A DNA stretch of 64,000 bases, from the IMG/VR virus record IMGVR_UViG_3300029984_000001, positions 199,572 through 263,571 of that record. The stretch is one strand, 5' to 3'. The notes below the pieces were generated by a model. That model saw only the letters and a program-made list of their open reading frames with translations. It made no database searches and was not told the origin of the DNA. Position 1 is the first letter of the stretch, and every line of letters begins with the position of its first letter. This document shows, piece by piece, positions 2,429-56,308 of the stretch. A program made the position numbers and the translations under genes.

Positions 2429-3298
2429 CTACCCTAAATATATTTTTTCAGAATAATTCATTAATTGATTTTGAATGTGTTGTTCAATATTTACTATGAA
2501 TGTATCTCCATCTTTACTACAAACTTGTATTTGTCTGCCACCTTCTAACATTGTATAAGAATTATTTAATAAATCAAATGATTCTTTGAAGAAATAAAGA
2601 TTAGCAGATTCTTGTTTTATATATTCTATTATTTGATTATTTGTAACTGGAATTAATATACCAGCATCATTTTCTTGTACTACAAATTTATTTCCAATAT
2701 TCTCTTTACCATGAGCCAATAAAGCATTTTCTGTTACACCAACAATAGAGGTGGTATAGGCTCTCTTATGTGAAGGGTATATAACTCTATCCCAAGTAAT
2801 AATAGTTATATTTTCTACTTCAGCCCCTCTTGAAGTTTGATTGACAGTACCTAATGCTCTTAACGAAAAAGATGGTTTATCTCCATCCATTAAATCTAAA
2901 TTAAATGCTTCACCGTAAGAATTATTCGAACCTTTTATATGAGCTTTGATATCATTACCGTCCACCCAAAACTTAACTATTTTATTACATCTTAAAGATG
3001 GTTCTATAATTTGCTGTCTAGAAATTTCTTTAGACATTGGATGACCTTCTTCTCCATATAAGTTTCCAGTTGCTACTAATTCAGTCAATCTATCAGCTTT
3101 TAAAGCTGGTTTCATTTCCTTATCTGAATAGAATCTTTTGTTTCTATTTTGTATATTCATATCTTGTAATATAACTTCAGCAGTTACTCTTCTACCATCA
3201 TTATCAACTATCTTCATTTCTGTCTCATGCATACATGTAGCAGTTTCTATAATAACATACCCTATTTTCTTATCATAATTATTATAAGTCATACCCAT
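2429..3298 (-). CDS. Prohead core protease (T4 gp21-like)
   Basis: Motifs LQDMNIQNRNKRFY, YGEEGHP (His), SFSLRALG (Ser), WDRVIYPS. Confidence 0.9.
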   Translation of the reverse strand: MGMTYNNYDKKIGYVIIETATCMHETEMKIVDNDGRRVTAEVILQDMNIQNRNKRFYSDKEMKPALKADRLTELVATGNLYGEEGHPMSKEISRQQIIEPSLRCNKIVKFWVDGNDIKAHIKGSNNSYGEAFNLDLMDGDKPSFSLRALGTVNQTSRGAEVENITIITWDRVIYPSHKRAYTTSIVGVTENALLAHGKENIGNKFVVQENDAGILIPVTNNQIIEYIKQESANLYFFKESFDLLNNSYTMLEGGRQIQVCSKDGDTFIVNIEQHIQNQLMNYSEKIYLG

Positions 3299-10144: not shown

Positions 10145-10181
10145 TATATAAAAATAATAAAATTTTAGGAGGATACATAAA

Positions 10182-10964: not shown

Positions 10965-11016
10965 AAATATTTTAAATGGGACTAATAATCCCATTTATTT
11001 TTATCGAGGTGAAATA

Positions 11017-11595: not shown

Positions 11596-11616
11596 AATTT
11601 TAGGAGGAATAATAAT

Positions 11617-27836: not shown

Positions 27837-28217
27837 CTATTTAATCATTTCATCTAATGATAATGTTTTGCTTGTATTATCTGATATTAAAGAATAGATA
27901 GTATTTTCTACTTGTATATCTATAAGTATTATTTTTGATTTCTTTTCTTTCTGGGTTATATTTATACTTACATTTTGTAACATAGGTAAATATTGTGCTA
28001 TTTGTTTTTCAGCATTTAATTGTAACGCAGGTATATCATCCATCCACATATTTCTGTAGTTTTTGTATAATCCTATACCCATATTAGGGTGAGTTTCTAT
28101 ATCTCCAGGGTTCATTAAAAATAATCTAATTAATAATATAGCAATAGCATTTTCACCTTCAAATACTTTAGGGTTTTTGTAATCATCTAATGATAAGACA
28201 TATTCTCTTATAGCCAC
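27837..28217 (-). CDS. Baseplate wedge/sheath initiator (gp25-like)
   Basis: LFLMNPGDIETHPNMGIGL...IAQYLP pattern. Confidence 0.7.
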   Translation of the reverse strand: MAIREYVLSLDDYKNPKVFEGENAIAILLIRLFLMNPGDIETHPNMGIGLYKNYRNMWMDDIPALQLNAEKQIAQYLPMLQNVSINITQKEKKSKIILIDIQVENTIYSLISDNTSKTLSLDEMIK

Positions 28218-28244
28218 ATATAATCACCTCTGATATATTAAATT

Positions 28245-28256
28245 TAATTATAAGTT
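28245..28256 (-). promoter_or_regulatory. Late promoter AACT-N6-TA
   Basis: Minus strand aact tataat ta. Confidence 0.65.
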
Positions 28257-28299
28257 TAACTTATAAAAAGATACATAATGTAAATATAAAGATTTATAA

Positions 28300-28318
28300 T
28301 TATATATTATACTTATGA
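28300..28318 (+). promoter_or_regulatory. Early-type promoter
   Basis: ttatatattata ctta tga. Confidence 0.65.
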
Positions 28319-28362
28319 ATACATAATAAAATATTTTAATTAAGAGGAGAGATTTAAAATGA

Positions 28363-28803: not shown

Positions 28804-29144
28804 GTCAAACAATAGTCATTGTTAAAGGTGGAGAAAAAGTCAATGATCTTTATTGTGAAAATAGAAGAGAATTTGTAGATGAAATTTATTTTACTACATC
28901 TGTTACAGATATTATTTGGTATCAAATAAAAGGGGTCGTAATAAATATTGATACATATGATAATGATGAAGATTTAACTGATTCTTGTTTACAAATAATA
29001 GATCTAGATAAGAAAGATGAATTATTACAATTGATAAAAGATTATGATAAATCTAAATTAACAGAAGCAGATTTATTTTGGTTATTGGAATTAGAAACAG
29101 TATTAAAATCTAATGACTATGATTATTTACAAATAAGTATTTAG
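28800..29144 (+). CDS. Hypothetical protein
   Basis: ATGA-coupled ORF, SD aaggagg. Confidence 0.7.
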   Translation: MSQTIVIVKGGEKVNDLYCENRREFVDEIYFTTSVTDIIWYQIKGVVINIDTYDNDEDLTDSCLQIIDLDKKDELLQLIKDYDKSKLTEADLFWLLELETVLKSNDYDYLQISI

Positions 29145-29156
29145 GAGAGGATTAAA

Positions 29157-30890
29157 ATGAAATTAAAAGATATGAAATTTGGTATTAAGGTAGATAATGA
29201 TTGGATTGAATGTGTAATTGGAAATAGTATTTATTATTCAAATAAATTAAGTATAAAATTTGATATTGAGGAAATTCTTGATATTCTTAATATTATAAGT
29301 AATTATTATAAATATACTAAAATAAGTTTTCATGTAGATGAAAACTGCCTTGGATATAAAATAACACATGATACTATTAGTTTATTGGCTGTAGAAATAA
29401 AGCCAGATGAAGAAATGATAAGTTGGATAATTAAAAATAAATCTAATGAATCTTATAATATAGAGATTCTATATAGAGAGCCAACTGTAATGGGGTTTCC
29501 CAATTTTATAAAAGAAAAGAAGAATACAGATAAGATTAAAGAGGAGACGATTAAAATGAAATTAAAAGAAATAATGTTTGGTATTAGATTTAGATCTATA
29601 AAGAGTGAATGTAACTGGCTTAAACGTTTTGATAAAGATGAAGTACTTCCATTGATGTTTGATATTCATATGACATTATACTCTTATAATGAAATAAAAG
29701 TATTTTTATCATTATATAATGAAGATGATATTGATATATGTTATGATGAAGATTGTGTTGGATACAAAATGACCCATAAAGATAGTAATTCAATAACACA
29801 ATTAAGTACTAGAGAATTAAAAGATCTATTTGATTTAGAATATGAAAATAATATACTTGAACCCATATACAATAATGAAGAGATGAAAAGTGATAATAAA
29901 ATGAAATTAAAAGACATGAAATTCTGTATTAAAAATATAAAAATAGATAAATGGGTTGGGAAGATAAAATATCACGAAACCATAGATCATGTAATAGAAT
30001 CAATAACATATGTCGATGATTATGAACATGAATATAATATTGATGAAATATTTGAAATATTTGATACTCAATCAGATATATCAGATTTTGAATTATATTG
30101 TGGTGAAAAATGTATTGGATATAGAATTACCTACGATAATAGTACACATAAATTTACACCTAGCAATTTAGTAGAGTTAGTCAGAATAAGTAAAGAACAA
30201 ATATTAAATTCAACCTATAAAGTTGAAATTGAAGTATTATATAAATGTGATATTATTTATGAAAATAAAGAAATAGAAGGAGATAATATTATAGACGAAA
30301 TTAAATATATTATTATGATAAAAACATGTTGCGATGATTGGGAATTTATTGGATATGAAGGGCAATATTCTTATTATCCAAGGAAAAAAGATATTATTAA
30401 TGCTAGAAAATTTAATAAAGATGATATTGATGTTCATCTAGGGAGAATATTATCATATTGTATGAATTTAGAACCTATAGAAATAAAAATACTAAAATAT
30501 GAAAATAATGGTAATTTAATAGCAAAACAATATAAAGAATTTAAAATTGATGAAGAAGAATTTGTATATAAGAATGATCCTATTATAAAACATATTGTAG
30601 ATTATTATCAAATAGTGCATAAAATAAAAGATTATTCGAAAATAGGTATGTTCCTAGATAGTATATATAATATAGCAATTGATGATAAAAACTATTTTTC
30701 AACATTTATAATAGCTTTATTTGAAGGTTTTCATCCTAAAATAACTCAATATCAAACAGATAAAGATTGTGTTTATAGAAAAATAAAAAATATGGATTTT
30801 GATATAGATGATATAAATAAATTATTTGAACAATCTCCATTAGAATTAAAATTACTAACAGAAATGTACAATTATCAAAATCAAGAATAA
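29157..30890 (+). CDS. Protein with three tandem MKLK[DE]xxF domains
   Basis: Repeat starts at 29157, 29556 and 29901, each with C[LVI]GY[KR]xT. Confidence 0.75.
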   Translation: MKLKDMKFGIKVDNDWIECVIGNSIYYSNKLSIKFDIEEILDILNIISNYYKYTKISFHVDENCLGYKITHDTISLLAVEIKPDEEMISWIIKNKSNESYNIEILYREPTVMGFPNFIKEKKNTDKIKEETIKMKLKEIMFGIRFRSIKSECNWLKRFDKDEVLPLMFDIHMTLYSYNEIKVFLSLYNEDDIDICYDEDCVGYKMTHKDSNSITQLSTRELKDLFDLEYENNILEPIYNNEEMKSDNKMKLKDMKFCIKNIKIDKWVGKIKYHETIDHVIESITYVDDYEHEYNIDEIFEIFDTQSDISDFELYCGEKCIGYRITYDNSTHKFTPSNLVELVRISKEQILNSTYKVEIEVLYKCDIIYENKEIEGDNIIDEIKYIIMIKTCCDDWEFIGYEGQYSYYPRKKDIINARKFNKDDIDVHLGRILSYCMNLEPIEIKILKYENNGNLIAKQYKEFKIDEEEFVYKNDPIIKHIVDYYQIVHKIKDYSKIGMFLDSIYNIAIDDKNYFSTFIIALFEGFHPKITQYQTDKDCVYRKIKNMDFDIDDINKLFEQSPLELKLLTEMYNYQNQE

Positions 30891-30930
30891 TAAAATTAAA
30901 GAGGGTGTTTTGCATCCTCTTTCTTTTTTG

Positions 30931-30942
30931 AACTTTAGAATA
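30931..30942 (+). promoter_or_regulatory. Late promoter AACT-N6-TA
   Basis: aact ttagaa ta. Confidence 0.65.
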
Positions 30943-30955
30943 AGAGGTGATTAAT

Positions 30956-33574
30956 ATGCCAAGATATAACGCTAATGAAATTGTAAATGAATCAAGTAAA
31001 TCAAATGAAAAACATTTATATTTTCTATCTAAAGATAATATGGATAATAAAACATTATATCCTAGAGTACCTGAGAATTATTTCACTAAGAATGGTCATG
31101 AAGATAATGAAACTAAAAGAGTTTGTTTTGCTACTTCTATACATAAAGCATTGATGGCTATTTCTATGAGAATGAAAGATATGATATTATATGTACATGT
31201 CCCTAAAACTATGAATATAGAGACATATAAACCTACAACAAAACAAGTTCCTGATTGTAAGATAACTGGAGAAACATGGGTTACTCATCCTATAGGACTA
31301 AAATGTATAGGGAAAATAAAAGTAATAGATGATTCTGGAAAAGATGGTCATAAATTTAAATACGGGGATAAAGAAGCTGAATTGTATGATTGGGACTGGG
31401 AATGGATTGAGAAGGATAAAGATATTATAAAGGAAAGATCTATAGTGAAAGAAAATCTATTAATTTCCGATAAAGATTTTTCAAATAATTTAGAGAAATG
31501 GGAGGATAGTAATTATCCAGTTTTATTAATCACAGGTCTATCGGGCGGTGGAAAGTCTACATTAGCTAATCAATTAGCTAAAGAATATAAAGCTGATGTA
31601 GTAGAATTAGATCAATTAGAATATAATCATAATAATTCAAAAAATAACTTTCTTAAAAAATTTATGGAAAGCGACTCAAAATATAATCAATATAATCATA
31701 TAAGTGAATATTGGAAAGACAAGAATGATAATACAGATAAAGATAAATTAATAAAAACAGTAAAAGAATATATTCATTTCTGTGTATCTTATGCTTTAAA
31801 GAACAATATTAAAACTATAATAGAAGGTATACAAATATATCAATTAATGTATACTAAAGAGGATTTGATTTATATGACTGATAAACCTATAATAATTATG
31901 GGGTCATCTCCTCTAATATCAAAATTAAGACAATTTAAAAGAATAATAAGTGGAGGTAACGGTGGACAAACATTAAAAACACTTATTCAAGATAATAATT
32001 ATTTAAGTGATTTTAGAAATGACATAAAATCTACAATAAAAGAAACAAAGGAGGATGATGAAATGGGTATTAGATTTAATTTAAATGAAAATAAAGAAAT
32101 TATAGTAAGACCACAATATGAATTATGTTTATTAGAATCAGGAGTATCTTATCAAAAGAAATATAAATGTCCTTATTGTGAAACTAGATTAGATAGACAA
32201 AAACTTATAACTCATATTTTAGATGAGCATGAAGATTTCATACCAGAAAATTATACTGCTACTAGAATTGTATTTAATATAATAAATAAAAAAGAAAAAG
32301 GTAGTTGTGTTATATGTGGTAAAGAAACTTTATGGGATGAGAATAAAGCTAAGTATGATAGATTCTGTTGTGAGAAATGTGTACAAGATTATAGAAAACA
32401 AAGAGATGAAGCTATGATACGAACAAAAGGTAAATTATATGTAACAGATGATCCAGAATTTCAAAAGAAGATGTTAGCTAATAGAGGAATATCTGGAGAA
32501 TATATATGGTCAGATGGAATAAAGAGAACTTATACTGGTAGTTATGAAAAGAAATTATTAGAGTTCTTGGATGAAGTAATGGGATTTAAATCATTGGATG
32601 TTATTACACCAGGTGATACAGTTTTATACGAAGATAATGAAGGTAAAGAACGTGCTTGGATATTGGATGTAACGATTATTCCTTATAATTTACAAATAGA
32701 TGCTAAAGATGGAGGGGATAATCCTAATAATAGAGAGATGCCTGAATATAGGGCTAAACAAACATCAAAAGAGAAAGCCATATTTGAACAAGGTAAATAT
32801 AATTATCTAAGACTTACTAATAATAACTTTGGGCAATTAATAAATACTCTGGCTCAAATTAAATTAAATCTATTAGATAATAAACAAGATAAAATATGGC
32901 ACGTAAATGAATATATGGCTATGAGTGGAGTTAATCCTGTGGTTACTAAAACAGCAGATTCTAAACCAGTATCTTACATAGTTCCTTGTATGATTCAAAA
33001 TTCATTTGTAGAGCCATTATATTCTAGAGATCAATATTTAGAAAAATTATATAGAATTGTAGATGGTAAATTAATATTAACTAATAGATCTGAAGTTAAG
33101 AAACAATTCGATGTATCTACTAAACTATTAAAATCTAGTGTAGCTGATAAAGTAAAAATCGGTATAGATGAATTAATTACTAAAGAACAATATGTAGATC
33201 ATAACATGATGTTTGAAATGTTAACAGGTCATCAATTATTAGATAAGAATCAATATTTCTTTGACGAGAATTTAGAGGTGGAATTGGAGGGTTTTTATAA
33301 ATCTAAAATAAGAAGGGATATTATAGAAGCTACTTTTTCAAATCTTCTAAATCAATATAAAGTATCTATTTGTGAGAATGCTCATAATATTAAATATAAA
33401 AATTTGACAATATTAAGAGATAATAAAGGATTCTATGCTTATAATGAAGAAACGAATAAAAGAACTGGAAGTTATGAATTAATAAACGAGATACCAGATG
33501 AAGTATTGGATTTATTGAATGATGATGATTTCTTAGATACAGATGATGATTTTAACTTTGAAGAAATCAGTTAG
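30956..33574 (+). CDS. Multidomain protein: ART-like domain, P-loop kinase, Zn fingers, PD-(D/E)xK-like nuclease
   Basis: LYPRVP...RVCFATS...DCKITGETW; ITGLSGGGKST; CPYC..H..H and CVIC..FCCEKC; YE...ILD...QIDAKD. Confidence 0.7.
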   Translation: MPRYNANEIVNESSKSNEKHLYFLSKDNMDNKTLYPRVPENYFTKNGHEDNETKRVCFATSIHKALMAISMRMKDMILYVHVPKTMNIETYKPTTKQVPDCKITGETWVTHPIGLKCIGKIKVIDDSGKDGHKFKYGDKEAELYDWDWEWIEKDKDIIKERSIVKENLLISDKDFSNNLEKWEDSNYPVLLITGLSGGGKSTLANQLAKEYKADVVELDQLEYNHNNSKNNFLKKFMESDSKYNQYNHISEYWKDKNDNTDKDKLIKTVKEYIHFCVSYALKNNIKTIIEGIQIYQLMYTKEDLIYMTDKPIIIMGSSPLISKLRQFKRIISGGNGGQTLKTLIQDNNYLSDFRNDIKSTIKETKEDDEMGIRFNLNENKEIIVRPQYELCLLESGVSYQKKYKCPYCETRLDRQKLITHILDEHEDFIPENYTATRIVFNIINKKEKGSCVICGKETLWDENKAKYDRFCCEKCVQDYRKQRDEAMIRTKGKLYVTDDPEFQKKMLANRGISGEYIWSDGIKRTYTGSYEKKLLEFLDEVMGFKSLDVITPGDTVLYEDNEGKERAWILDVTIIPYNLQIDAKDGGDNPNNREMPEYRAKQTSKEKAIFEQGKYNYLRLTNNNFGQLINTLAQIKLNLLDNKQDKIWHVNEYMAMSGVNPVVTKTADSKPVSYIVPCMIQNSFVEPLYSRDQYLEKLYRIVDGKLILTNRSEVKKQFDVSTKLLKSSVADKVKIGIDELITKEQYVDHNMMFEMLTGHQLLDKNQYFFDENLEVELEGFYKSKIRRDIIEATFSNLLNQYKVSICENAHNIKYKNLTILRDNKGFYAYNEETNKRTGSYELINEIPDEVLDLLNDDDFLDTDDDFNFEEIS

Positions 33575-33603
33575 AATATATTTGTAAATAATTGGATTTA
33601 TAA

Positions 33604-33622
33604 CCATATATTATATACTTGA
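33604..33622 (+). promoter_or_regulatory. Early-type promoter variant
   Basis: ccatatattata tact tga. Confidence 0.55.
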
Positions 33623-33640
33623 GAGAGAAGGGGATATAAT

Positions 33641-33808
33641 ATGGATATTTATATTGGTCAAAGGGTTATAAATCCAGTATACAAACCATCAGATATTATA
33701 CATAATAGAAAACGAATTTTAACAAAACATAAAAAGAAAGAGGAAGAGATACAAACAAATTTTCAAAGTATTTTAGATGAATATAAAAAACGGGGGAGTG
33801 TAAAATGA
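33641..33808 (+). CDS. 55-aa basic protein (below the ORF-track cutoff)
   Basis: SD aagggg; MDIYIGQRV...RGSVK*; ATGA overlap with the next gene. Confidence 0.6.
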   Translation: MDIYIGQRVINPVYKPSDIIHNRKRILTKHKKKEEEIQTNFQSILDEYKKRGSVK

Positions 33809-35031
33809 AAGAAAAGAAAGATAAGTATTTCGATTTAAAGATTCATTTAAACAATTTTAAAGGAAATAGTGGAATAGATATCGTAAATAAGATTCAACAA
33901 ATTTTAAAAGATAATGGTATAAATCCAAATTCTATATTAATACAAGATACAGAAAATTATAAACATCAAAAGTTAACATTATCAAATATGTGTAAATTCT
34001 TTGGTTTATCTAAATCGGAAATTTTAGAATCTAGAAAAATAAATTGGTTTAAGATATCTGAACATGCTCAATTATCTGAAGGATTTATTAGATTTGCAGA
34101 TGATAAATTAGATTGGGATTGGATTTGTTATAGGGTTAATAAAGATGAATTAAAAGTAGGGAAAGAATTTAAAGACATATATCAATATAATTTTGAAGAA
34201 TATGAATATTCTTATGACGACGAAATTCCAGATAGTGGTGAGACTAGATTAAGTGGTGATATAAATAAAATGAATAAGAAAAAAGATGATTGTAAACCTG
34301 ATATATCTAATCATCACAATAGAGGAATGAGATCACCTTATGATAGTGGTCTTCCTTTTATACCACCCGATAAACCATATTTTAAAGATGTACCAGAATT
34401 TAAATTGCCACCATTAACATTCTTTGAAAATAAACCAGAATTTCAAGGTTCTTATATAGGAGATCCAATGGGAATACCATCCTTTATTCATCCTATGGAT
34501 GGTAATGTACCTTTGGATATAGAAAATATGTCGGAAGATGAATTAAATGATCTTAAAGAAGATCTAGCAAAACAATATGGAATTCCTCCAGAAGCAGTTG
34601 TAATAAATTATATTGATCCTAATACAGGAATAAATCATGAGAATATAACTAATAATCCCTATTACAATAATCCAGAACTAGCTAAAGAAGAAAATAAAAA
34701 ACAATTAATGAAAACTTATATAACCATGGATAATTATAAAAAAGAATTATTAGATATGAATCATTATGATTCTAATATGTGGTCAATGATATCTAGAAAA
34801 CTTTGGTTATCTCCAGAATTTGTAGATCATTTTAAAGATAAAATATACTTTGCAGGATTAGTAAATGAAAATCCTCATTTTGTAGAGCTAATGAAGTGTG
34901 ACTGGTTCTTCGATAAATATATAGATACTTTTAAAGAATTAAAAGTTGTACAAAATGTTATGACAAGACATTTAAAACCTGAATTTACTGTAATAGAAGG
35001 TGGATTAAAGTTACCAAAAAGTGAAATGTAA
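33805..35031 (+). CDS. Trp-repeat protein with central Pro-rich insert
   Basis: INWFKISEHAQLSEGFIRFADDKLDW and WSMISRKLWLSPEFVDHFKDKI. Confidence 0.7.
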   Translation: MKEKKDKYFDLKIHLNNFKGNSGIDIVNKIQQILKDNGINPNSILIQDTENYKHQKLTLSNMCKFFGLSKSEILESRKINWFKISEHAQLSEGFIRFADDKLDWDWICYRVNKDELKVGKEFKDIYQYNFEEYEYSYDDEIPDSGETRLSGDINKMNKKKDDCKPDISNHHNRGMRSPYDSGLPFIPPDKPYFKDVPEFKLPPLTFFENKPEFQGSYIGDPMGIPSFIHPMDGNVPLDIENMSEDELNDLKEDLAKQYGIPPEAVVINYIDPNTGINHENITNNPYYNNPELAKEENKKQLMKTYITMDNYKKELLDMNHYDSNMWSMISRKLWLSPEFVDHFKDKIYFAGLVNENPHFVELMKCDWFFDKYIDTFKELKVVQNVMTRHLKPEFTVIEGGLKLPKSEM

Positions 35032-35045
35032 AGGGGGTGTCGTAA

Positions 35046-35282
35046 ATGAAGAAGATTGTAAAAAGTAAAGATGATGTTATAGAAGGATTGGGTTATATAA
35101 TTAAAAGATACAATCAATTAAAAATCAAAATTAATAAAAGTTCTGCTTACACAAAAGAAGAGACAGAAGAAAGACTTAAATTGTTACATGAAAGAGATAT
35201 CTTAAGTAATATATTATATGAACATTTTGATTTACAAGATCATGAATTAGATGATGAAGATAATGAAATAATTATAGAATGA
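35046..35282 (+). CDS. Hypothetical protein
   Basis: SD aaggggg; followed by a terminator at about 35291-35322. Confidence 0.65.
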   Translation: MKKIVKSKDDVIEGLGYIIKRYNQLKIKINKSSAYTKEETEERLKLLHERDILSNILYEHFDLQDHELDDEDNEIIIE

Positions 35283-35329
35283 TTATTATAAATAAAAGGG
35301 ATTTAGTTCCCTTTTATTTTTTATCGAAA

Positions 35330-35341
35330 AACATTAGACTA
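35330..35341 (+). promoter_or_regulatory. Late promoter AACA-N6-TA
   Basis: aaca ttagac ta. Confidence 0.7.
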
Positions 35342-35359
35342 ATAAAAGGAGGGGTTTAG

Positions 35360-47555: not shown

Positions 47556-48728
47556 TTATAATCCACTTGTATCTATTTTAGAATTATCAGTCCCTTGAAC
47601 TGTTGCTTTATCTTCAGGTTTAGTTGTAGAAGTATCACTCTTACCAACATGATCTTTTACATGTGATCTTATAATTTGCATATAAGCTTTATACATCTCT
47701 TCACATACTTGACATTTAGCAGTCATTAATTCACCGACAACTTTAATGTATATTTTAATCTTATCGACAGATTTATCACTACCACCTGCATTGTCAATTT
47801 GAGTTTGATCAACCTCTTTATTTGCAGTTCCTTGTTGATTTATAACAGCTTTATTAGGATCTGAAGTATTAGATACACCAGCTTGAGATGGTGTTTGATT
47901 AACAGTTGCTTGTTCTGGTGCTTTTATATCCACTTCATTTATTACAGTATTTTCATATAAATACGATTTATAACTCCCATAGGCAAAGAAATCAAAACTT
48001 TCTTTTGTAGCTCCTGTTGGTACTGGAGCCACTGGTTCTTGAGTTTTTGCTTCTCTGCTCATTTGTTCTATTCTTTTTTGTACATCATCAGCAGCTACTT
48101 TTATATTCTTTTTATCTGTATCAAATTTCTTAGCAATAGCTTCATAATTAACACAGAAGTTATAAGCATCTGTCATATTAAATTTAGAACTTTCTATTGC
48201 TAATTCGGAATCAGATCCTCTAAATAAAATCTTAACAGCTTCTTCAAAATTTATATCACCATTCTTCTTTTGAATAGCTTCTACTTTTTTAAAGTATTTA
48301 GTTACAAAAATTTCTTCCGATTCTAAATCTTTTTCTAAAGAACTAAAGTTAAATGCAGGAGCATATGTACCTAATAAATCGGGCTGACCAACTTGATAGT
48401 TATACATTGTGAAAGTATAATTCTGTAAGAATGTTTTCTTTAATATAATATCTTTATATTTAATAAGATAATTCTTATCTCTCTTAATCAAAGCACTCAT
48501 AGCTTCTATGAACCTTCCCCATATACGAGTTAAGGCTGCTATAATCTTAGCAATAGCTCCTTTTACCTTTTCTGCTACACCTTCTGTTACTACAAACATA
48601 TTATTCAATGTATTCTTCTCTTGTGCAGTTAGAACAGATTCTTGTATAGCAGCAATTAGATTAGTTTTATTAATTGTACTCTCTGATAAATATATAACGT
48701 AATTCCATTCATCACAATAATTATCCAT
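47556..48728 (-). CDS. Internal head protein paralog 5
   Basis: VTE|GVAEKVKGAIAKIIAALTRIWGRF...RDKNYLIKY. Confidence 0.7.
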   Translation of the reverse strand: MDNYCDEWNYVIYLSESTINKTNLIAAIQESVLTAQEKNTLNNMFVVTEGVAEKVKGAIAKIIAALTRIWGRFIEAMSALIKRDKNYLIKYKDIILKKTFLQNYTFTMYNYQVGQPDLLGTYAPAFNFSSLEKDLESEEIFVTKYFKKVEAIQKKNGDINFEEAVKILFRGSDSELAIESSKFNMTDAYNFCVNYEAIAKKFDTDKKNIKVAADDVQKRIEQMSREAKTQEPVAPVPTGATKESFDFFAYGSYKSYLYENTVINEVDIKAPEQATVNQTPSQAGVSNTSDPNKAVINQQGTANKEVDQTQIDNAGGSDKSVDKIKIYIKVVGELMTAKCQVCEEMYKAYMQIIRSHVKDHVGKSDTSTTKPEDKATVQGTDNSKIDTSGL

Positions 48729-48729
48729 A

Positions 48730-49818
48730 TTATATCTCTCCTCTCTTTATTTTTTGTACTTGAGCAATTGCTTTATAGCAAACACTTCTAGAAGATTTAT
48801 AACATTCTTTAAATGCATCTAATTTAGCACTAAAAGATATAGAATGTATAGCACTCATTTCTGATATTTGATCTGTCTTGGCTTTTACAAATAGATTTAA
48901 ATAATTTAGAGTCTCAGAATCAACACTATAAGCTGCGACATTATTAGCACCTGATACTTTATTATCAAAGTTCACACTAACTTTATTACCACCATCTTTT
49001 TTATCAACTTTTAATAAACTAGATACATAATTCTTTATATTAGTATATTGAATCTCAATTTGTTTCTTAGTATCTTCTACACTTTTCAAAGCAGTTTTAT
49101 AATCTTTTACAAATAAATAAGCAGTATTTACATTATCAGATTTAATTGTAATATCTTCTTTAGTGTCTTCATTATTTCTAAATACTTTAAATAAAGAATC
49201 TTTATAATCCTCTTTAGAAATTTTCTCTCCAGTTCTTCCAATTACTGAAGCTCTTAGAGAATCATAATAATCTCCATCTAATTTATTTTTAAATGTTTCA
49301 TAGTTATTCTTAGCAGCATCTGATTTCTCTCTATTAGTTTTATTATCATCCCAAGTACCAGAATCTAATTCTATAAAACCTTCTTGGAAATTTGCTTGAG
49401 CATCTATAATAGGAATATTATCTTTAAAAGTATAAGTATAATCATTTATATCAAACTCACAAGAATCATCAAATTTACCTAATAGATCAGCATGTTTAAT
49501 TAAATACTTATCAGATCTGATTGCACCATTTATAGCTCTAACAAATCTATCCCATAAGTTTTTAATAAATGATAAGAATTTAGATATAATACTAACTACC
49601 TTGGAAGTAAAATCAGAGAACCCTTCATTAATAGCAACAACATCTGATCCTGATTCTAATAGAGATCTATATAATTGTTTATTTACTTCTATCATATTTC
49701 TTTCTGATTCTAATACATAATTTAATGTAGTTGCAAAGAAATTTTCTTCTATACCACTTGTAGTAGATAAATCATTAGAATTGGTTTCATTAAGACTTAA
49801 ACACTTTATATCAAACAT
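48730..49818 (-). CDS. Internal head protein paralog 4
   Basis: INE|GFSDFTSKVVSIISKFLSFIKNLWDRF...SDKYLIKH. Confidence 0.7.
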   Translation of the reverse strand: MFDIKCLSLNETNSNDLSTTSGIEENFFATTLNYVLESERNMIEVNKQLYRSLLESGSDVVAINEGFSDFTSKVVSIISKFLSFIKNLWDRFVRAINGAIRSDKYLIKHADLLGKFDDSCEFDINDYTYTFKDNIPIIDAQANFQEGFIELDSGTWDDNKTNREKSDAAKNNYETFKNKLDGDYYDSLRASVIGRTGEKISKEDYKDSLFKVFRNNEDTKEDITIKSDNVNTAYLFVKDYKTALKSVEDTKKQIEIQYTNIKNYVSSLLKVDKKDGGNKVSVNFDNKVSGANNVAAYSVDSETLNYLNLFVKAKTDQISEMSAIHSISFSAKLDAFKECYKSSRSVCYKAIAQVQKIKRGEI

Positions 49819-49886
49819 TAATTATTCCTCCTTTAAAATTTATAAAAAACGAAAGGGTAAATAATACCCTTTCATTAATTTATATA

Positions 49887-50915
49887 CTAAACAAATGATA
49901 AATCATTAGGCATTTCATAACCTTCTTTAGCAGTCTTAGTTATTAATCTAAGAGCAACACCTTTATTTTGTCTATTTCTAGCTTTAATAGCAGTCAAGTA
50001 CGCTCCATTATAAGTTTGAATAGCAGATAAACAAGTCTTTAGATCTTCTACATCATATGTGCAAGCTCTTTGAGCATCCCCATTTTCAACAGATCCTGTT
50101 TCTTTACCAAGACTTTTCTTTCTACCATCTACTATACTGATTAATTTATTAATGAATGTTTTAACAGATTTATACGCTTTCATTGCATCAGTTTTATCTT
50201 GTTTAGCTGATGTAATTTCTGATACGATATTATCTGCATTTATAGTAACATTAACTTTAGAATCTTCACCCTTTCTAAATAATTTAAATAATTCTTTAGA
50301 ATATTCAGAAGATGATAATTCACTTTGACCTAATGCAGCTCCTCTTATTTTTGCTGATATTTCTTCAGACTTAGTATCTTTATGTGAAGATAAAATTTCT
50401 GAATCACTTCTTGTAAAGTATTTAGATAACTTACTTTCAGCTTTATCTATACCATTTTCAGATATACTGAAATTGAATCCTTTGTATTCAACCCCTACTG
50501 TACTTGCTGACTTAATTTTATCTCCATATTTCTTTACGAAAGCTTTATCATTCATGACGAATCTATTAATCATCATAATAAATTTATCAAATAACACTTT
50601 TATTTTCTTTCCTATAGAAATAAAAAAGTTTTTAACCTTTTCTAAAAATCCACCATCACCGAATGCTTCATTAACAGGCATTTCTACTCTATTGATAGAA
50701 AAATATTCTAATTCTTTTAAACCACAAGATTCACATATATCAAAATATTCTTCTTCAGTGAAAGCATTAATAGCTTCAGTACCTTCCATTGTAGGTTCAT
50801 AATGAAACTCTATACCTTGTACATCTGCAAATTCTCTTTGAATTGCTTCATCTGAAATATCTATAGGACCACTATTAGCATTTTCATTAAATATCATTGA
50901 ACTGTATCTTCCCAT
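49887..50915 (-). CDS. Internal head protein paralog 3
   Basis: VNE|AFGDGGFLEKVKNFFISIGKKIKVLFDKF...NDKAFVKKY. Confidence 0.7.
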   Translation of the reverse strand: MGRYSSMIFNENANSGPIDISDEAIQREFADVQGIEFHYEPTMEGTEAINAFTEEEYFDICESCGLKELEYFSINRVEMPVNEAFGDGGFLEKVKNFFISIGKKIKVLFDKFIMMINRFVMNDKAFVKKYGDKIKSASTVGVEYKGFNFSISENGIDKAESKLSKYFTRSDSEILSSHKDTKSEEISAKIRGAALGQSELSSSEYSKELFKLFRKGEDSKVNVTINADNIVSEITSAKQDKTDAMKAYKSVKTFINKLISIVDGRKKSLGKETGSVENGDAQRACTYDVEDLKTCLSAIQTYNGAYLTAIKARNRQNKGVALRLITKTAKEGYEMPNDLSFV

Positions 50916-50940
50916 ATTAATTTTCCTCCTTAAATTTGAT

Positions 50941-50952
50941 TATTTTAAAGTT
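50941..50952 (-). promoter_or_regulatory. Late promoter AACT-N6-TA
   Basis: Minus strand aact ttaaaa ta, overlapping the 13-bp hairpin at 50947..50985. Confidence 0.65.
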
Positions 50953-50997
50953 AAACTCTCAAAAAATAAATAAGAGTTTAACTTTTTATATTTTTTA

Positions 50998-52140
50998 TTA
51001 AGCTACTACTACTTCTAATGTATCTAGAGTTTCTAAAGTTTCATCATAAGCAGATTCTGCTAATGCATCTAAATAAACTTGTTCATTCATTTTAGATTTG
51101 GCAACTACTTTTGTGAATAGTGCTTTACATTGAGCAATATGCATTTTTACAAGACCAATATAAGCTCCATTTACCATATTATTAGCTGTTTGATTAACAG
51201 AAACTGTTCTACTAAATGTATTTAGTTTCTTAGTGTCACTAGAATTACCTGAAGCTGAACTAGTTCCTTTAAATGATGCAATTTCTATATTACTATTCTT
51301 TTCTGAAGATAATTTCCCTTTAGCTGAATCTATTTCAGATAACAACTTCTTGAAGAACTCTCCATTTTTCTTGTTAGAATCTTCTAATGTTTTGACTATT
51401 TTAGTAGTACCAAGTACTTCATTAACTTGTTTAGTCATTGAATCTGTTACAGATTCAAAACTATCTTTATTATCAAAGTAATCATTTTCTAAATCTTTCT
51501 TAAAGCTAGATCTAGTTGCACCAGACACTATTGAACTTAATAGAGATTCTAAGAAACTTCCATCATTTATTTCTTCATCTCTTTTCTTAAGAGCATCCCC
51601 ATTCATTCCATTTATTGAAGATAATGCACCAGCAGCTTCACCATCAAATTTACCAAATGGTATAGCTGTTAAACTTAATTCTTTCTTAAGAACTTTGAAT
51701 TTAAAGCTACCTTTATAACTCTTAGAATTACTATTAAAAGTATTTACATGTTTCTTATAGAACTTATTATAATCTCTAGTTAGGAAAGAAGAGATTTTAA
51801 CTTTAAGTGCTTCATATAAAGACTTAATCTTTTGCCATGCTTTCATAACCATAGTTTTAAGTTTTGATAAGACATCACCAAAACCTTCTGTTACTACAAC
51901 AATTTCAGCAGCTTCATTAACTAAACCCTCTTTTTCTAATTGTTCTTTTTTGAATGTAGCACCTAATTCATTGAACTCTTTTTGCATTGAGTCGTCGAAT
52001 GAGACTCTTTCATTTGTATATGATTCACCTATTAGTCTTAAGCAAGCACCTGCACTATAATCGAAACCTTCTATTACAGGTACATCTGTGTTGTCATTAA
52101 TACCATTTTCATTAAAAATATTAGAACTATATCTTCCCAT
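50998..52140 (-). CDS. Internal head protein paralog 2
   Basis: VTE|GFGDVLSKLKTMVMKAWQKIKSLYE...RDYNKFYKKH. Confidence 0.7.
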   Translation of the reverse strand: MGRYSSNIFNENGINDNTDVPVIEGFDYSAGACLRLIGESYTNERVSFDDSMQKEFNELGATFKKEQLEKEGLVNEAAEIVVVTEGFGDVLSKLKTMVMKAWQKIKSLYEALKVKISSFLTRDYNKFYKKHVNTFNSNSKSYKGSFKFKVLKKELSLTAIPFGKFDGEAAGALSSINGMNGDALKKRDEEINDGSFLESLLSSIVSGATRSSFKKDLENDYFDNKDSFESVTDSMTKQVNEVLGTTKIVKTLEDSNKKNGEFFKKLLSEIDSAKGKLSSEKNSNIEIASFKGTSSASGNSSDTKKLNTFSRTVSVNQTANNMVNGAYIGLVKMHIAQCKALFTKVVAKSKMNEQVYLDALAESAYDETLETLDTLEVVVA

Positions 52141-52171
52141 ATTAATTGTCCTCCTTTTATATTTTCTAATT

Positions 52172-52183
52172 TAATATAAAGTT
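52172..52183 (-). promoter_or_regulatory. Late promoter AACT-N6-TA
   Basis: Minus strand aact ttatat ta. Confidence 0.65.
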
Positions 52184-52201
52184 AATTGAATAACTATCAG
52201 A

Positions 52202-53347
52202 TTATGCATTTAGGAATTCTAAGGATTCATAAACAGCATTTTCTTCAATAGCATCCAATAAAGTTTGTTCTGTAAATTTAGATCTAGATACAACTTTAGT
52301 AAATACAGATTTACATTGAGCTATATGCATCTTGATTAGAGAAATATACTCTCCATTTATAATATTATTAGCAGTTTGATTAACAGAAACTATATTAGAG
52401 AATAATTCTAATCTCATTGAATCTATAGGATGAGAATCTTTTAAATAAACACTATTAGTATTATTTTTATCTTGACCAAATGTTGAGTTTTTCCATTCAT
52501 GTCTTTCATCTGTTGTATCATTAGATTTATTCAAAGTAGACTTCATTGAATCTATTTCAGATAATAGTTTTTTGTAATAATCATTATTAGATTTTTGAGC
52601 TTTATTTAAATTCACTATTATATCTTTAGTACCCAATACTGTTTGCACTTCCTTTATAATAGCATCTGATAATTGTTCATGGTCATCTTTGTCTTCAAAT
52701 AATTGACTATATACTTCTTTTTTATAATCAGATCTTGAACACCCTAAAAGTGATTCTAAATAAGAACCATCTGATATTTTTTCTTTTTCAGATTTAATTT
52801 CTTCTTCTTTTTTGTTTTCACATTTCTTTAAAGTAGTATGAGCCTTAGATTCAAAACTACCATATTTTAAAGCACTTAAATCTAAAGTAGATTTAGGCAT
52901 TTTAAAACTATATTTACCTTTAGTATTCTTTGCATAATTACTAAAAGTATTTTGATGTTTCTTATAAAACTTATTATAATCTCTAGTTAAGAAGGCTGAT
53001 ATTCTAACTTTTACAGCTTCATATAAAGACTTAATCTTTTGCCATGCTTTCATAACCATTGATTTAAGTTTTGACTTTATATCAGCAAAACCTTCTGTAA
53101 CAATTTCTATCTTAGCAGCTTCTGTAAACATTCCTTTAGCTTCTAAATCTGCTTTTGCAATTTCAGCAGCAATTTCATTCATTTCAGATTTCATAGATTC
53201 ATCAAACACAGATAGTTCTTGTTGACTAGCTTCTGCAATTATTCTTAGATAAGCTCCTGGATCACTACCATATCCTTCTATTACAGGAACTTCTTCCTCA
53301 TTATAACGTCCTATAGAAGTGGTATTACCTCTTAATAAATGTCCCAT
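52202..53347 (-). CDS. Internal head protein paralog 1
   Basis: VTE|GFADIKSKLKSMVMKAWQKIKSLYE...RDYNKFYKKH. Confidence 0.7.
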   Translation of the reverse strand: MGHLLRGNTTSIGRYNEEEVPVIEGYGSDPGAYLRIIAEASQQELSVFDESMKSEMNEIAAEIAKADLEAKGMFTEAAKIEIVTEGFADIKSKLKSMVMKAWQKIKSLYEAVKVRISAFLTRDYNKFYKKHQNTFSNYAKNTKGKYSFKMPKSTLDLSALKYGSFESKAHTTLKKCENKKEEEIKSEKEKISDGSYLESLLGCSRSDYKKEVYSQLFEDKDDHEQLSDAIIKEVQTVLGTKDIIVNLNKAQKSNNDYYKKLLSEIDSMKSTLNKSNDTTDERHEWKNSTFGQDKNNTNSVYLKDSHPIDSMRLELFSNIVSVNQTANNIINGEYISLIKMHIAQCKSVFTKVVSRSKFTEQTLLDAIEENAVYESLEFLNA

Positions 53348-53362
53348 TATATTTTACCTCCT

Positions 53363-54412
53363 TTAAAATAAACTATTACCATCATCTTCATCCGAATCTC
53401 CGTCATCATTTAATTTAGCTGGAGCTTGATCAATAATATCATCAGCTTTAAATTTAATAGATGATTCTTTTTTAGATTCAGCAGATGCTTTATTGTCGGC
53501 AGATTTCATATCTATTGCAACATGATTTGCAATCTTTGCAAATTTCTCTGCAATTGCGTGTTGTTTAGATGCAATTTCTTTTCTTTTTACAGGATCTATT
53601 GATGGGTTTGATTGAACTCTATAAGCATTTGCTTGTAGTAACTCAGCCTGTAATTCAAAGTAATCACTAATCTTGGTTCTTACATGAAAGAAGAAGAATA
53701 TCATCTCCCTCATCATAGGAATAATATTCATTAGGATTGCAATTAAAGCTGCACCACCAAGAACCCCTATAGCAGCACTAGTACCTAATAATCCTTTTTC
53801 TTTAGAATATCCTGAAATAATATAAGATAATGATTTTTGTACATCACCTTTATCGCAAGAGTTATTAAACTTTTCAAGATTCTTTAATAGTAAATGATCT
53901 TTTGTTTTATTCAAAGCAACTTTATCTAATTCTATATCAAAATTATCAGCATTAGGTGACTTTATCATTTCTACCGAGGTAGCTATTAATAATGATGTAG
54001 CAGATACAATTGAAAGTACAATCGAATTATATAATACCATAGGTAGTTCTATATTCAACATATAACCTTTCATAAAGAGATTTTTATTCTCTTCCATATT
54101 TTGAATTGCTTTGTAAATAGTATTAACAGAATCTTGACTTCCTTTGAATTCTTTTATTAATCCTGATATTATATCTAAAGAATCTAGAGTTGAACTATAT
54201 CCACTATATGATGTAATGTCTCCTTTACTCTTCTCTATATCACCAAAATCAATATTTTCAAATTTCTCACTTATAAGTTTATGATACAATCTATCACATA
54301 ATGAACTTATGGCAGAATGTTCTTCAGCTTCATTCATCGATGTAATTACATTTAACGTTTCATCATCGAAAATATCAAAGTGTTCATTTATAGCAACTTC
54401 ATATATACCCAT
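53363..54412 (-). CDS. Putative virion protein with a hydrophobic segment
   Basis: Leader MGIYEVAINE; LLGTSAAIGVLGGAALIAILMNIIPMM. Confidence 0.6.
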   Translation of the reverse strand: MGIYEVAINEHFDIFDDETLNVITSMNEAEEHSAISSLCDRLYHKLISEKFENIDFGDIEKSKGDITSYSGYSSTLDSLDIISGLIKEFKGSQDSVNTIYKAIQNMEENKNLFMKGYMLNIELPMVLYNSIVLSIVSATSLLIATSVEMIKSPNADNFDIELDKVALNKTKDHLLLKNLEKFNNSCDKGDVQKSLSYIISGYSKEKGLLGTSAAIGVLGGAALIAILMNIIPMMREMIFFFFHVRTKISDYFELQAELLQANAYRVQSNPSIDPVKRKEIASKQHAIAEKFAKIANHVAIDMKSADNKASAESKKESSIKFKADDIIDQAPAKLNDDGDSDEDDGNSLF

Positions 54413-54427
54413 ATCGAATCCCCTTTC

Positions 54428-56308
54428 TTATCTTATTTTAGACATAAGATTTATAATCTTTTTATAATCATTACCTTTATCTTCTCTCTCTAATGATCTA
54501 AATGCCATTTCTTCGTAAAGATCATCTCCAGTATCAAAGATAAATTTAGCAACTTCATTATTCTCATCTATAATACAGAAACACATTAAGTTATATGATT
54601 CCATTATAGGTCTAATTATTTTTGGATCTTCTAAATCAATATCTTCCATTTTCTTTAGATATTCTGCTTCTTCTTGAGTTATAGTTAAAGATGTAATTGC
54701 AGTAGCATCATTAATTGATCCGATAGTTCTATTGATTCTACTTTTAATTCCTCTTCTTTCTAATACTTTCCAAAGTTTAGAAGATGATCCTTTTCTTGAT
54801 TGAGAAAGAGCATCCAATTTAGCTCTATCAATAGCAAATAAGAAATCTCTACAGAATGATATTTCTCTAGTAGTAGCTTTTATCAAACCTATTAAGAAAT
54901 GTTTATCTACATGCTTAATGGTGAGCCTTTTTAATATATCATCTGAATTAACAGGATATAATTTAGCCTTAACTCCTATAACAGTTTGAGATTGTATTGG
55001 TCTACCATTATCCCCTTTAGATATGTAATTTACTATCATAGTAGTAGGAACCAATTCATTTGGTTTCTTAACATCATTATCTAAAAGTTGATTCTTTAAG
55101 TAATCAATTCTATTTCTTACTACATCAGCATCAAATCTAGACTTGTCTAAATTCATTTTATCTGCAAATTTTTCATCTTCTCTTCCATCTCTCTTTTCTT
55201 TATAATTTTGATTTAATTTATCTTGATCTTTTTGGTAATTAAATTTAGATAATTGATTATTATAATCTCTTACATCATTTTCAATATCTTTATTAAATTT
55301 ATTCACAGCTAATTGATGAGTTCTATCAGATTGAGATGTTTGATTATTCATTTTCTCTCTATCATTATCCATTCTTTCTTGATCTAATGCATTTCTGGTA
55401 TCAGATTCCATCCTTTTAAATTCGAAATCATTAGCATCTTTATTCACTTGATAATCTGACCCAGCATTTTTATAAGTCATATCAAAACCAGAATTAGTTG
55501 TTTTAATCATTATATCTTTTTCAGCTCTGTCTACAACTAAAGCGTAATCTGGGTTACTACTATAATAACCAACATCATATGATATACCATGTGCAGTTTG
55601 TCTTATATCTCCATTAGGGTCTCCAATTGCTTCAGTGACAGCTTTTTTATTTTTACCAATATTCATATATTTTGGGTCTGTATCTATGATACTGTCTAGA
55701 TAATCTAATTCTTCCATATCTGAATCTGTTAGTTTTTTATGTTTCTTTGATTTAGATTCATTTAATATATATGACTCATTTAAAGAATTTTTAGGTTTAA
55801 TGATTAAGTAGTCGGCTAGAGAAGATTCTTCTCTGATACTATTAGGTAAGTAATTGCTAAGGTTTCTTAAATCATTAGAATATTTTACATATAATTCTTC
55901 ATTATCAACCATAACAGCACCTTCTAATACTAAGTGATCCATCATGTTCATAAATTTATCTATTGTCATAGATCCATCTAATTTTAAATTAGTATGGAAA
56001 TTTTTAAGGTATGTAATTCCATCTTCAGCATTTGATATAGACAAAGCACTAAATAACATTTGAAGCATACTTACAGCTTTACGTTCCATTGCTTTTGAAA
56101 ACATAGAAGCATTGTCTATTGTCATACCTCTAGATACTACACAAGGAAATACTAAAGTTAAATTAGCTGTAGCCGCAGCTATTGATCTAAAACTTTTACC
56201 TTGGGATCTATTACTAATTGCATCTATAGCATCAGCATTTTTCAATTCTTCTAACATATCCATAGCATCTCTAATTACTGTTTCATGTATCATTTTACAA
56301 TAATTCAT
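54428..56308 (-). CDS. Putative virion structural protein with central charged insert
   Basis: Late promoter; leader MNYCKMIHE; LNE and VTE sites before a D/K/N/Q-rich coiled region. Confidence 0.6.
   Translation of the reverse strand: MNYCKMIHETVIRDAMDMLEELKNADAIDAISNRSQGKSFRSIAAATANLTLVFPCVVSRGMTIDNASMFSKAMERKAVSMLQMLFSALSISNAEDGITYLKNFHTNLKLDGSMTIDKFMNMMDHLVLEGAVMVDNEELYVKYSNDLRNLSNYLPNSIREESSLADYLIIKPKNSLNESYILNESKSKKHKKLTDSDMEELDYLDSIIDTDPKYMNIGKNKKAVTEAIGDPNGDIRQTAHGISYDVGYYSSNPDYALVVDRAEKDIMIKTTNSGFDMTYKNAGSDYQVNKDANDFEFKRMESDTRNALDQERMDNDREKMNNQTSQSDRTHQLAVNKFNKDIENDVRDYNNQLSKFNYQKDQDKLNQNYKEKRDGREDEKFADKMNLDKSRFDADVVRNRIDYLKNQLLDNDVKKPNELVPTTMIVNYISKGDNGRPIQSQTVIGVKAKLYPVNSDDILKRLTIKHVDKHFLIGLIKATTREISFCRDFLFAIDRAKLDALSQSRKGSSSKLWKVLERRGIKSRINRTIGSINDATAITSLTITQEEAEYLKKMEDIDLEDPKIIRPIMESYNLMCFCIIDENNEVAKFIFDTGDDLYEEMAFRSLEREDKGNDYKKIINLMSKIR

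Follow-up and report, generated by a model that had tools for sequence, protein, structure and literature searches.

Can one gene of a jumbo phage supply several independent enzymes to the host cell? The question is raised by a gene on the plus strand of the IMG/VR record IMGVR_UViG_3300029984_000001, whose final 64 kb (64,000 nt of 263,571 bp) are the window analyzed here and supply the coordinates used below. The encoded 872-residue protein is made up of four modules, denoted D1 to D4, with short peptides ending in hydrophobic-Asn-Glu at several of their edges. It is proposed, with moderate confidence, to be a late, modular protein of the polyvalent type that is built on the D3 nuclease, cut by the S77 prohead protease of the phage, and carried in the head. 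What appears to be new here, judged from sequence comparison, is that a very large family strings together folded enzymes, differing in kind and order from member to member, with conserved sites of the prohead-protease type between them. The features of the gene are as follows.

30956..33574, plus strand: whole gene, 872 amino acids (leader, D1, D2, leader-like linker, D3, and D4)
30956..30991, plus strand: 12-residue leader with a V-N-E end (site 1, Glu12); homologues carry an INES-type motif upstream of D1
31007..31420, plus strand: D1, residues ~18-155, ADP-ribosyltransferase (ART)-superfamily-like fold from fold searches of the model
31427..31453, plus strand: IKE160 and VKE166 at the D1/D2 junction, possibly a cleavage site or a degenerate form of one; P2 varies in the other putative substrates as well
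31463..32050, plus strand: D2, residues ~170-365, P-loop nucleoside/nucleotide-kinase-like domain from its Walker A motif and profile matches
32048..32054, plus strand: internal Shine-Dalgarno sequence AAGGAGG, spelled by the rare codons AAG and GAG
32063..32089, plus strand: leader-like peptide MGIRFNLNE with an L-N-E end (site 2, Glu378), disordered in the model
32156..32890, plus strand: D3, residues ~401-645, the universal core, with C2H2 finger, Cys4 ribbon, and Vsr-like nuclease
32162-32233, plus strand: C2H2 finger of D3, from zinc-finger matches
32300-32383, plus strand: Cys4 ribbon of D3, from zinc-finger matches
32657-32713, plus strand: catalytic stretch of the D3 nuclease, Vsr-like PD-(D/E)xK
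32903..32911, plus strand: V-N-E (site 3, Glu652) at the D3/D4 junction, the best-conserved site
32912..33535, plus strand: D4, residues 653-860, a conserved C-terminal domain with unassigned fold
33536..33571, plus strand: acidic C-terminal tail, disordered

The major evidence for processing is the placement of the tripeptide motif. A first-pass annotation of the window had claimed that domain boundaries coincide with [ILV]xE, and all of the tripeptides that it listed are present (VNE10-12, IKE158-160, VKE164-166, IKE361-363, LLE392-394, and VNE650-652). The loose motif was found to be weakly above chance, with 22 sites against 15.3 +/- 3.3 in shuffled sequences and 7 against 3.3 expected in the linkers, whereas the narrower motif [ILVM]-N-E was significant. 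Strict copies in the linkers are VNE12, LNE378, and VNE652, of which the earlier list had caught two and missed LNE378; IKE363 and LLE394 were rejected as sites because no conserved counterpart was found in homologues. These three strict sites are the highest number in any open reading frame (ORF) of the 263-kb genome, where the genome-wide density predicts ~0.43 (Poisson probability ~0.01, by our own arithmetic). They are located in or beside linkers with a low predicted local distance difference test (pLDDT) score; the leader is disordered, with pLDDT <50 for residues 1-17, and a disordered stretch (653-667) directly follows Glu652.

The same placement was observed across the family. Motif density was determined for 149 representatives at 50% identity, with D1-D4 set by hidden Markov models and a flank defined as 20 amino acids. 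The domain boundaries themselves were taken from alignments to the query, and the Pfam-defined cargo and the disorder profile of the model agree with them. Per 100 amino acids, [ILVM]NE was found 1.85 times in domain flanks, 0.09 times inside domains, and 0.27 times in other regions. The motif is therefore 20 times denser near domain edges than inside domains, and the same result was obtained with 120 proteins, while no contrast between edge and inside was seen for the control motifs [ILVM]NK, ND, NQ, and KE. It occurs within 25 residues after the C terminus of D3 in 129 of 147 representatives, is usually followed by S, Y, N, G, or A, and sits just outside D1 and D4 wherever these are placed. 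D1 is flanked at any position, and Pfam-defined GNAT, HAD, and P-loop cargo is bracketed in the same way, as in the arrangement INEG, HAD, LNES, D1, LNES, GNAT, INEN. The segments between sites are domain-sized, with a median of 253 residues. In an alignment of 43 D3-D4 sequences, Glu652 is invariant and the two residues before it, I/V and N, reach 90% conservation or more; the Glu at the junction is retained between proteins of just 35-40% identity. Outside the window, an ORF of 2910 residues on the minus strand (G000:C1:282-9014) was observed to have two strict [ILVM]NE[SGAYN] sites.

Sites ending in Glu were also located in the prohead protease and the head proteins of the same phage, whose genes are the following.

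2429..3298, minus strand: prohead protease, Peptidase_S77/S80 (T4 gp21-type), PF03420 and PF20034
6369..8129, plus strand: major capsid protein with the candidate maturation site I-T-E106
47556..56308, minus strand: seven paralogous virion proteins with PHROG 'virion structural protein' matches

The protease was assigned from Pfam scores of 40.4 bits for PF03420 (cut-off 27) and 35.9 for PF20034 (cut-off 23.4). T4 gp21, of the S77 family, cuts after the Glu of L/I-x-E (PMC9026906), and gp245 of SPN3US cuts at A-x-E with Ser favored at P1' (PMC10052503). A candidate auto-cleavage site, V-T-E, lies at about residue 201 of the window's protease. Its Glu, invariant in seven homologues including that of AR9, sits right after the catalytic domain and ahead of an indel-rich linker, and relatives read ISE, VSE, or IKE. 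The position of this C-terminal site parallels the self-processing of gp21, gp175, and gp245. In the capsid protein, Glu106 within [IVLM]-x-E is invariant in 120 of 120 homologues and separates the poorly conserved N-terminal ~105 residues from the conserved capsid body; the site is common to AR9, phiR1-37, Staphylococcus phage DC4, and Listeria phage LPJP1. The seven paralogues share a single invariant position, the Glu in [IV]-[NT]-E, which ends the variable N-terminal part; like their counterparts in phiKZ-type phages, they probably reside inside the head or are ejected, and carry propeptides. The agreement of the Glu sites in the capsid protein, the paralogues, the protease, and the 872-residue protein is the argument from which the junction motifs are deduced to be protease sites.

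A further likeness to the capsid protein was found at the D3/D4 junction. Pairwise BLASTP of this junction against the capsid site and N-arm gave 9 identities in 21 positions, and the first ~45 residues of D4 were aligned by hhalign to the putative capsid cleavage site and N-arm with a probability of 72% (E 3.4e-5, 57 columns). Such a likeness could reflect extended recognition by the protease, mimicry for entry into the prohead, or a shared origin.

The family to which the protein belongs is large and mosaic. More than 1000 homologues were retrieved, or 2147 clusters when counted at 50% identity with E <= 1e-3, and their lengths range from ~290 to ~2000 residues. Among the best 119 homologues D3 is universal, while D1 is present in ~55%, D2 in ~45%, and D4 in ~40%. 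Whether the cargo varies among homologues had been named beforehand as a check, and it was found to vary widely: further modules include GNAT (often duplicated), NUDIX, HAD, metallophosphatase, SNF2 helicase, extra P-loops, and the domains of unknown function DUF5661, DUF5662, and DUF6582. The query has four modules and some relatives have more than eight. Stand-alone D3-D4 proteins of 480-510 residues are common, and D1 alone also occurs in viruses. The first-pass annotation had supposed that effector domains were added in front of an ancestral head protein, and neither half of this proposal was sustained as worded. Since module order is shuffled between homologues and D3 is frequently N-terminal, an addition of cargo in front is too simple a description, and the conserved core is not a known head protein but the zinc-finger nuclease D3, of the AR9 g233/phiR1-37 g237 type. 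In one relative with a stand-alone D3-D4 gene (L003/L004), a protein of 1242 residues containing DUF6582 is encoded two genes downstream (8042-11770, plus strand); this may be a separate cargo polyprotein.

The four domain calls made earlier (ART-like, P-loop kinase, zinc fingers with a PD-(D/E)xK nuclease, and a C-terminal domain) hold at the level of fold or profile. The ART call had been named the least certain, and it is supported by fold searches of the D1 model (pLDDT 85.6). In a search of 48,161 chains nearly all of the top 25 matches were of the ART superfamily, with Z from 6.1 to 3.6. The best were TreX (6.1), Arr (5.3), Scabin (5.3), and Tpt1 (5.2), and further matches were EcPltA, CARDS, pertussis S1, NatT, ParT, MbcT, RES, and DarT; Foldseek searches of the PDB and the ESM Atlas both gave Arr and RES. 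Fold searches alone were informative, as no Pfam family was matched by any of 38 D1 members and no PDB sequence was matched. S25, E49, R55, D100, and E106 are invariant in D1; the check for the triad (H-Y-E or R-S-E), which was made by alignment, found S25, R55, and E106 among them, with Phe at the strand-1 position of the query. Because the scores are modest, the support is for an ART-superfamily fold and does not extend to an assignment of activity.

D2 was recognized by the Walker A motif GLSGGGKST (31535-31561, residues 194-202), which is invariant among homologues, and by profile matches to adenylate, shikimate, uridine, dephospho-CoA, and APS kinases (E 5e-9 to 1e-3). Every Pfam match of D2 fell under the gathering score, the best being nSTAND3 with 26.9 against 27.2. 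D3 matched the PHROG 'endonuclease' family phrog_15137 over profile positions 3-234 of 236 (E 3.2e-35). Its best fold matches were Vsr (Z 8.3), I-Bth0305I (Z 8.1), and TnsA (Z 7.8), followed by Bax1, VRR-NUC, and Hjc. The catalytic pattern is D571...D582-A-K584, in which D571 and K584 are invariant, as are the finger Cys and His residues, and D582 is present; the counterpart motif in AR9 and phiR1-37 is PDFY...IIE[IV]K. For D4, fold searches of the Atlas and the PDB gave no convincing match, and the only near-invariant residues are E, G, and R. Its N-terminal half gave weak NlpC/P60-like fold matches (YiiX, DUF862, PLAAT, and TseH, Z 4-5), but a peptidase assignment was dropped because neither Cys nor His is conserved.

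The ORF at 30956-33574, as called in the first-pass annotation, was borne out as a real reading frame. Identical copies of the 872-residue protein were found on 9 contigs, and the DNA of the gene is present in at least 19 peat-metagenome runs. Contigs from four peat runs span the gene, including the D2-D3 junction, with no indels or joints; the fusion is not an assembly artefact. A nucleotide search of cultured phages gave no match, and none of the RNA runs searched contained the gene. The window has a G+C content of 25% and a jumbo phage gene set: a multisubunit RNA-polymerase beta-like gene, GroEL-like, primase, and dCTP-deaminase-like genes, the major capsid protein, and many 'virion structural' genes. 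Since distant homologues of its prohead protease and capsid protein are found in AR9, phiR1-37, DC4, and LPJP1, the phage is deduced to be a remote relative of that group.

Phages of the AR9-like group transcribe with their own RNA polymerases. The transcription and translation signals ahead of the gene, and the neighboring gene used as an anchor for synteny, are listed here.

27837..28217, minus strand: gp25-like baseplate wedge gene, divergent from the locus; the syntenic gene in L002 carries GPW_gp25
30898..30929, plus strand: terminator-like hairpin with T-run, which ends the upstream early-type unit; the only such site in 28200-35400
30931..30942, plus strand: AR9-type late-promoter-like motif AACT-N6-TA, 14-25 nt upstream of the ATG
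30942..30949, plus strand: Shine-Dalgarno sequence AAGAGGTG for the start ATG at 30956

The late-promoter consensus of AR9 is AACA-N6-TA/G (PMC5312081). In the window, AAC[AT]N6T[AG] was found at -50..-20 of 12 of the 46 genes against 1.7 expected. Most of these are structural genes; among them are those for the capsid protein, virion proteins, and the gp25-like product, as well as the 30956 gene (positions are, e.g., 6327 for the capsid gene, 30931, 56674, and 60222). The early-type motif TATATTATATAC lies 3' of the gene at 33607. A scan for sigma-70 promoters was uninformative, with fewer matches than in shuffled sequences. The gene has positional orthologues beside the divergent baseplate-wedge gene in AR9 (g232/g233), phiR1-37 (g236/g237), and DC4 (00082/00081). 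Of these, AR9 g233 has a late promoter and is expressed late, with values of 0.47, 141, and 1092 at 5, 20, and 40 min (PMC5312081 supplement), and phiR1-37 g237 is annotated as 'phage structural protein'. From the late AR9 orthologue, the late-type motif upstream, the terminator before the gene, and the early-type motif after it, late expression of the 30956 gene is a reasonable inference, and the earlier description of the gene as late-expressed is consistent with both the measured orthologue and the upstream motif.

A second start site within the gene had been noted earlier and was found as described: AAGGAGG at 32048-32054 is followed after an 8-nt spacer by an in-frame ATG at 32063 (Met370, MGIRFNLNE). 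AAGGAGG is the standard Shine-Dalgarno sequence of this phage, and nearly all of its plus-strand copies precede gene starts. The codons from which it is built are in the minority, as Lys is encoded by AAG in 22% of cases and Glu by GAG in 17%. In a relative of 71% identity the Shine-Dalgarno sequence and ATG are retained at the same boundary while the flanking residues differ, and the stand-alone homologues P0045 and P0069 start exactly at query residue 370. Strong in-frame pairs are also seen at module boundaries in other relatives, e.g., just before D4 in L034. Like the N-terminal leader, the Met370 peptide ends in a strict site. These observations suggest that the Met370 start is probably used, which would give a 503-residue product comprising leader, D3, and D4; as an alternative it may be a well-kept relic of gene fusion, and use is favored over relic. 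An AGGAGG followed by ATG at the D3/D4 junction of L007, L008, and L010 was deemed coincidental because it is Gly-Gly-encoded and the spacer is only 4 nt.

Taken in order, the proposed mechanism would be as follows. The precursor would be incorporated into the prohead, where the S77 (T4 gp21-type) protease would cleave after Glu12, Glu378, and Glu652, and perhaps after residue 160 or 166. Cleavage would free the 12-residue leader and the separate enzymes, and the fragments would stay inside the head until they pass into the host together with the DNA. The internal ribosome-binding site at Met370 probably adds a shorter product of leader, nuclease, and D4, laid out exactly as the stand-alone homologues from related phages are. 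The analysis itself establishes the domain folds, the statistics and conservation of the motif, the presence of the protease, the similar motifs in genuine head proteins, the synteny, and the promoter-like motifs; that the protein is cleaved, packaged, and injected, that its modules are active enzymes, and that the internal start is used are steps that we infer.

Several observations weigh against this mechanism. For every multi-domain member, cleavage and residence in the virion are deduced, and the specificity of the protease was derived from alignments. The cultured relatives carry a single nuclease domain only, with no [ILVM]NE site, and many homologues begin directly with D3 and have no leader. 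The D1/D2 junction of the query lacks the strict motif, whereas relatives carry INEG155 or VNES140 at this point. Where the 872-residue protein has Asn at P2, the capsid protein and the protease have T, S, Q, or K. AR9 g233 is not among the 'virion proteins' in the AR9 tables. Finally, the strand-1 position of D1 is Phe in the query, where the expected His is found in 13 of 38 homologues, and the activity of D1 is uncertain because of this replacement.

Of the alternatives, the one that survives best is that the protein acts uncut late in the infected cell, in DNA or nucleotide metabolism or in the breakdown of host DNA, with [ILVM]-N-E serving to link or cap domains structurally. In its favor, P-loop kinase, HAD, NUDIX, and metallophosphatase modules are of types common among nucleotide-pool enzymes, a guanylate kinase gene follows the nuclease gene in Staphylococcus phage DC4, a dCTP-deaminase-like gene is nearby, and the missing virion label of AR9 g233 would also fit. 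A structural linker, however, needs no invariant Glu and hydrophobic P3 across more than 100 diverged junctions between unrelated domains. The motif lies in disordered segments, a like signature marks the propeptide boundary of the capsid protein, the head paralogues, and the protease, and phiR1-37 g237 is annotated as structural. This explanation was concluded to be unlikely.

Still less likely is that the protein is packaged but left uncut, or that the leader alone is removed and the inter-domain motifs are unused. The virion RNA polymerase of phage N4 is packaged unprocessed and provides the precedent, but the inter-domain motifs are conserved equally to or more strongly than the N-terminal one.

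Processing by another protease, whether an embedded peptidase in D4, the product of the neighboring ORF 35360-36925, or a host enzyme, is regarded as improbable to a slightly greater degree. The release of domains by an embedded peptidase has been proposed for polyvalent proteins (Iyer et al. 2017, PMC5512222), and the fold matches of the N-terminal half of D4 noted above are of a suitable type. In ORF 35360-36925 (plus strand, 521 residues) a His...Cys pair (SHAGI ... ICSQFV) of the permuted-papain/YiiX type can be recognized by eye. Against these points, D4 has no conserved Cys or His, ~60% of the motif-bearing members are without D4, and cutting after Glu is a hallmark of S77. The neighboring ORF matched nothing in Pfam or the PDB and shows no relationship to D4 (hhalign probability 0.3%), and it was rejected both as a protease and as a relative of D4; its PHROG match is weak and oddly named. 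It is very improbable that the motif is a footprint of module shuffling, i.e., a short recombination junction in the DNA with no role in the protein, since extensive shuffling of domain order and content in the family is set against junction DNA so diverse (30 distinct 12-mers in 35 junctions, with six codons at P3 and 18 at P1') that selection is deduced to act on the peptide, and since a neutral footprint would decay where the Glu is kept at 35-40% protein identity; the idea was rejected on the codon diversity.

The proposed head-carried, protease-cut protein was compared to known systems. The earlier comparison to polyvalent proteins stands as regards disparate domains, mosaic architecture, and a late or structural context, and fails as regards an embedded peptidase. 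As in polyvalent proteins (PMC5512222), several unrelated enzyme domains are found per polypeptide and the architecture is variable between relatives. The cargo types ART-like, GNAT, NUDIX, nucleases, and SNF2 helicase are shared, and in both cases the proteins are phage-encoded beside late or structural genes, with delivery along with the DNA presumed; the one indirect pointer to such delivery is the structural annotation of phiR1-37 g237. The query differs in that Pfam searches found no embedded metallopeptidase or other hallmark anchor domain in it, although an embedded peptidase is frequent and not obligatory in polyvalent proteins. It differs further in that its modules are separated by a hydrophobic-N-E motif matching the signature of a prohead protease acting in trans, and in that its core is a zinc-finger Vsr-like nuclease. 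Neither prohead-protease processing nor the D3 nuclease family is mentioned in the two papers of Iyer et al. that were consulted (including PMC5512222).

The closest mechanistic precedents are T4 Alt and the internal (IP) proteins, together with the multiply cleaved head proteins of phiKZ-type phages. T4 Alt is a head-carried, ejected ART that is trimmed by gp21 at both ends (PMC9026906). As in Alt and IPI-III, the query would be cut after Glu by an S77 protease, and its 12-residue leader compares with the ~7-10 residues removed in T4; a leader ending in V-N-E precedes the ART-like domain in the query, as a parallel to the ART of Alt. The T4 proteins are single cargoes with terminal trimming, whereas the family described here has internal sites between modules, and no sequence similarity was detected between the query and Alt or the T4 capsid-targeting sequence (CTS). 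In the T4 CTS, processing is blocked when the Glu is replaced by Asp. With phiKZ, 201phi2-1, and SPN3US (gp175/gp245) the phage shares jumbo size, multisubunit RNA polymerases, and paralogous head proteins with N-terminal propeptides. The phiKZ-type protease auto-cleaves on its C-terminal side and prefers Ser at P1', and the window encodes a protease and a set of paralogues equivalent to these. The phiKZ-type phages have a small residue (A/S/G) at P3, where the query phage has I/V/L/M, as in T4. In SPN3US, all reported cleavages except the protease's own remove N-terminal propeptides, and none frees a folded enzyme domain (PMC10052503).

The D3 homologues of cultured phages are the zinc-finger endonucleases of AR9 (g233), PBS1, phiR1-37 (g237), and Staphylococcus S6-like phages (phrog_15137), with 30-36% identity and E values to 4e-37. 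These are single-domain proteins of ~235-245 residues, to which the query adds D1, D2, D4, the linkers, and the internal start. As an analogy only, RNA-virus polyproteins are likewise single translation products cut at short conserved sites into enzymes. The phage is a DNA phage, however, its protease is separate and capsid-associated, and its products are presumed to be cargo and not replication machinery.

A literature search on polyproteins and prohead proteases found no account of a family punctuated in this manner. It is quite possible, if somewhat short of probable, that this is the first recognized polyprotein system of a tailed phage, spread over more than 2000 clusters at 50% identity among uncultured jumbo phages, in which arbitrary enzyme modules lying between prohead-protease sites are loaded, cut, and ejected as separate enzymes. 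In such a system the capsid-mimicking segment may act as the ticket for prohead entry, and the balance between long and short forms would be governed by in-frame internal starts. If this is true, a jumbo phage delivers several independent enzymes from one gene, of NAD-using, phosphotransfer, and nuclease types in the query and also of acetyl-transfer and hydrolase types in relatives, and the fields of polyvalent proteins and of prohead-protease maturation are joined. A hydrophobic-N-E in a disordered linker would then be a simple sequence rule by which head cargo could be recognized, and the ends of its fragments predicted, in thousands of phages known from metagenomes, and the family would offer a natural modular route for loading foreign proteins into phage heads.

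Other observations were made in the window. The early-type motif TATATTATATAC occurs exactly five times (1005, 23871, 33607, 42059, and 57590), mostly just upstream of genes, and is likened to the AR9 early-promoter consensus; with one mismatch allowed, 13 copies were found against 7.5 in shuffled sequences, which is marginal. At 39677-41068 (plus strand), a dCTP-deaminase-like domain (residues 1-155) is followed in one protein by ~300 more residues of unassigned function. Given also that the phage is distantly related to AR9 and phiR1-37, it may be asked whether its DNA contains deoxyuridine (dU). Just upstream of the 30956 gene, a protein of 577 residues (29157-30890, plus strand) has three internal repeats starting at residues 1, ~134, and ~250, each opening with a Met-containing MKLKDMKFGIK-like peptide, and has no Pfam or PHROG match; its gene belongs to a unit that carries an early-type promoter motif and ends at the terminator at 30898. 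An HNH endonuclease gene (22978-23850, minus strand), with an early-type motif upstream, adjoins the RNA-polymerase beta-like gene (24014-25522, minus strand) and may encode a homing endonuclease.

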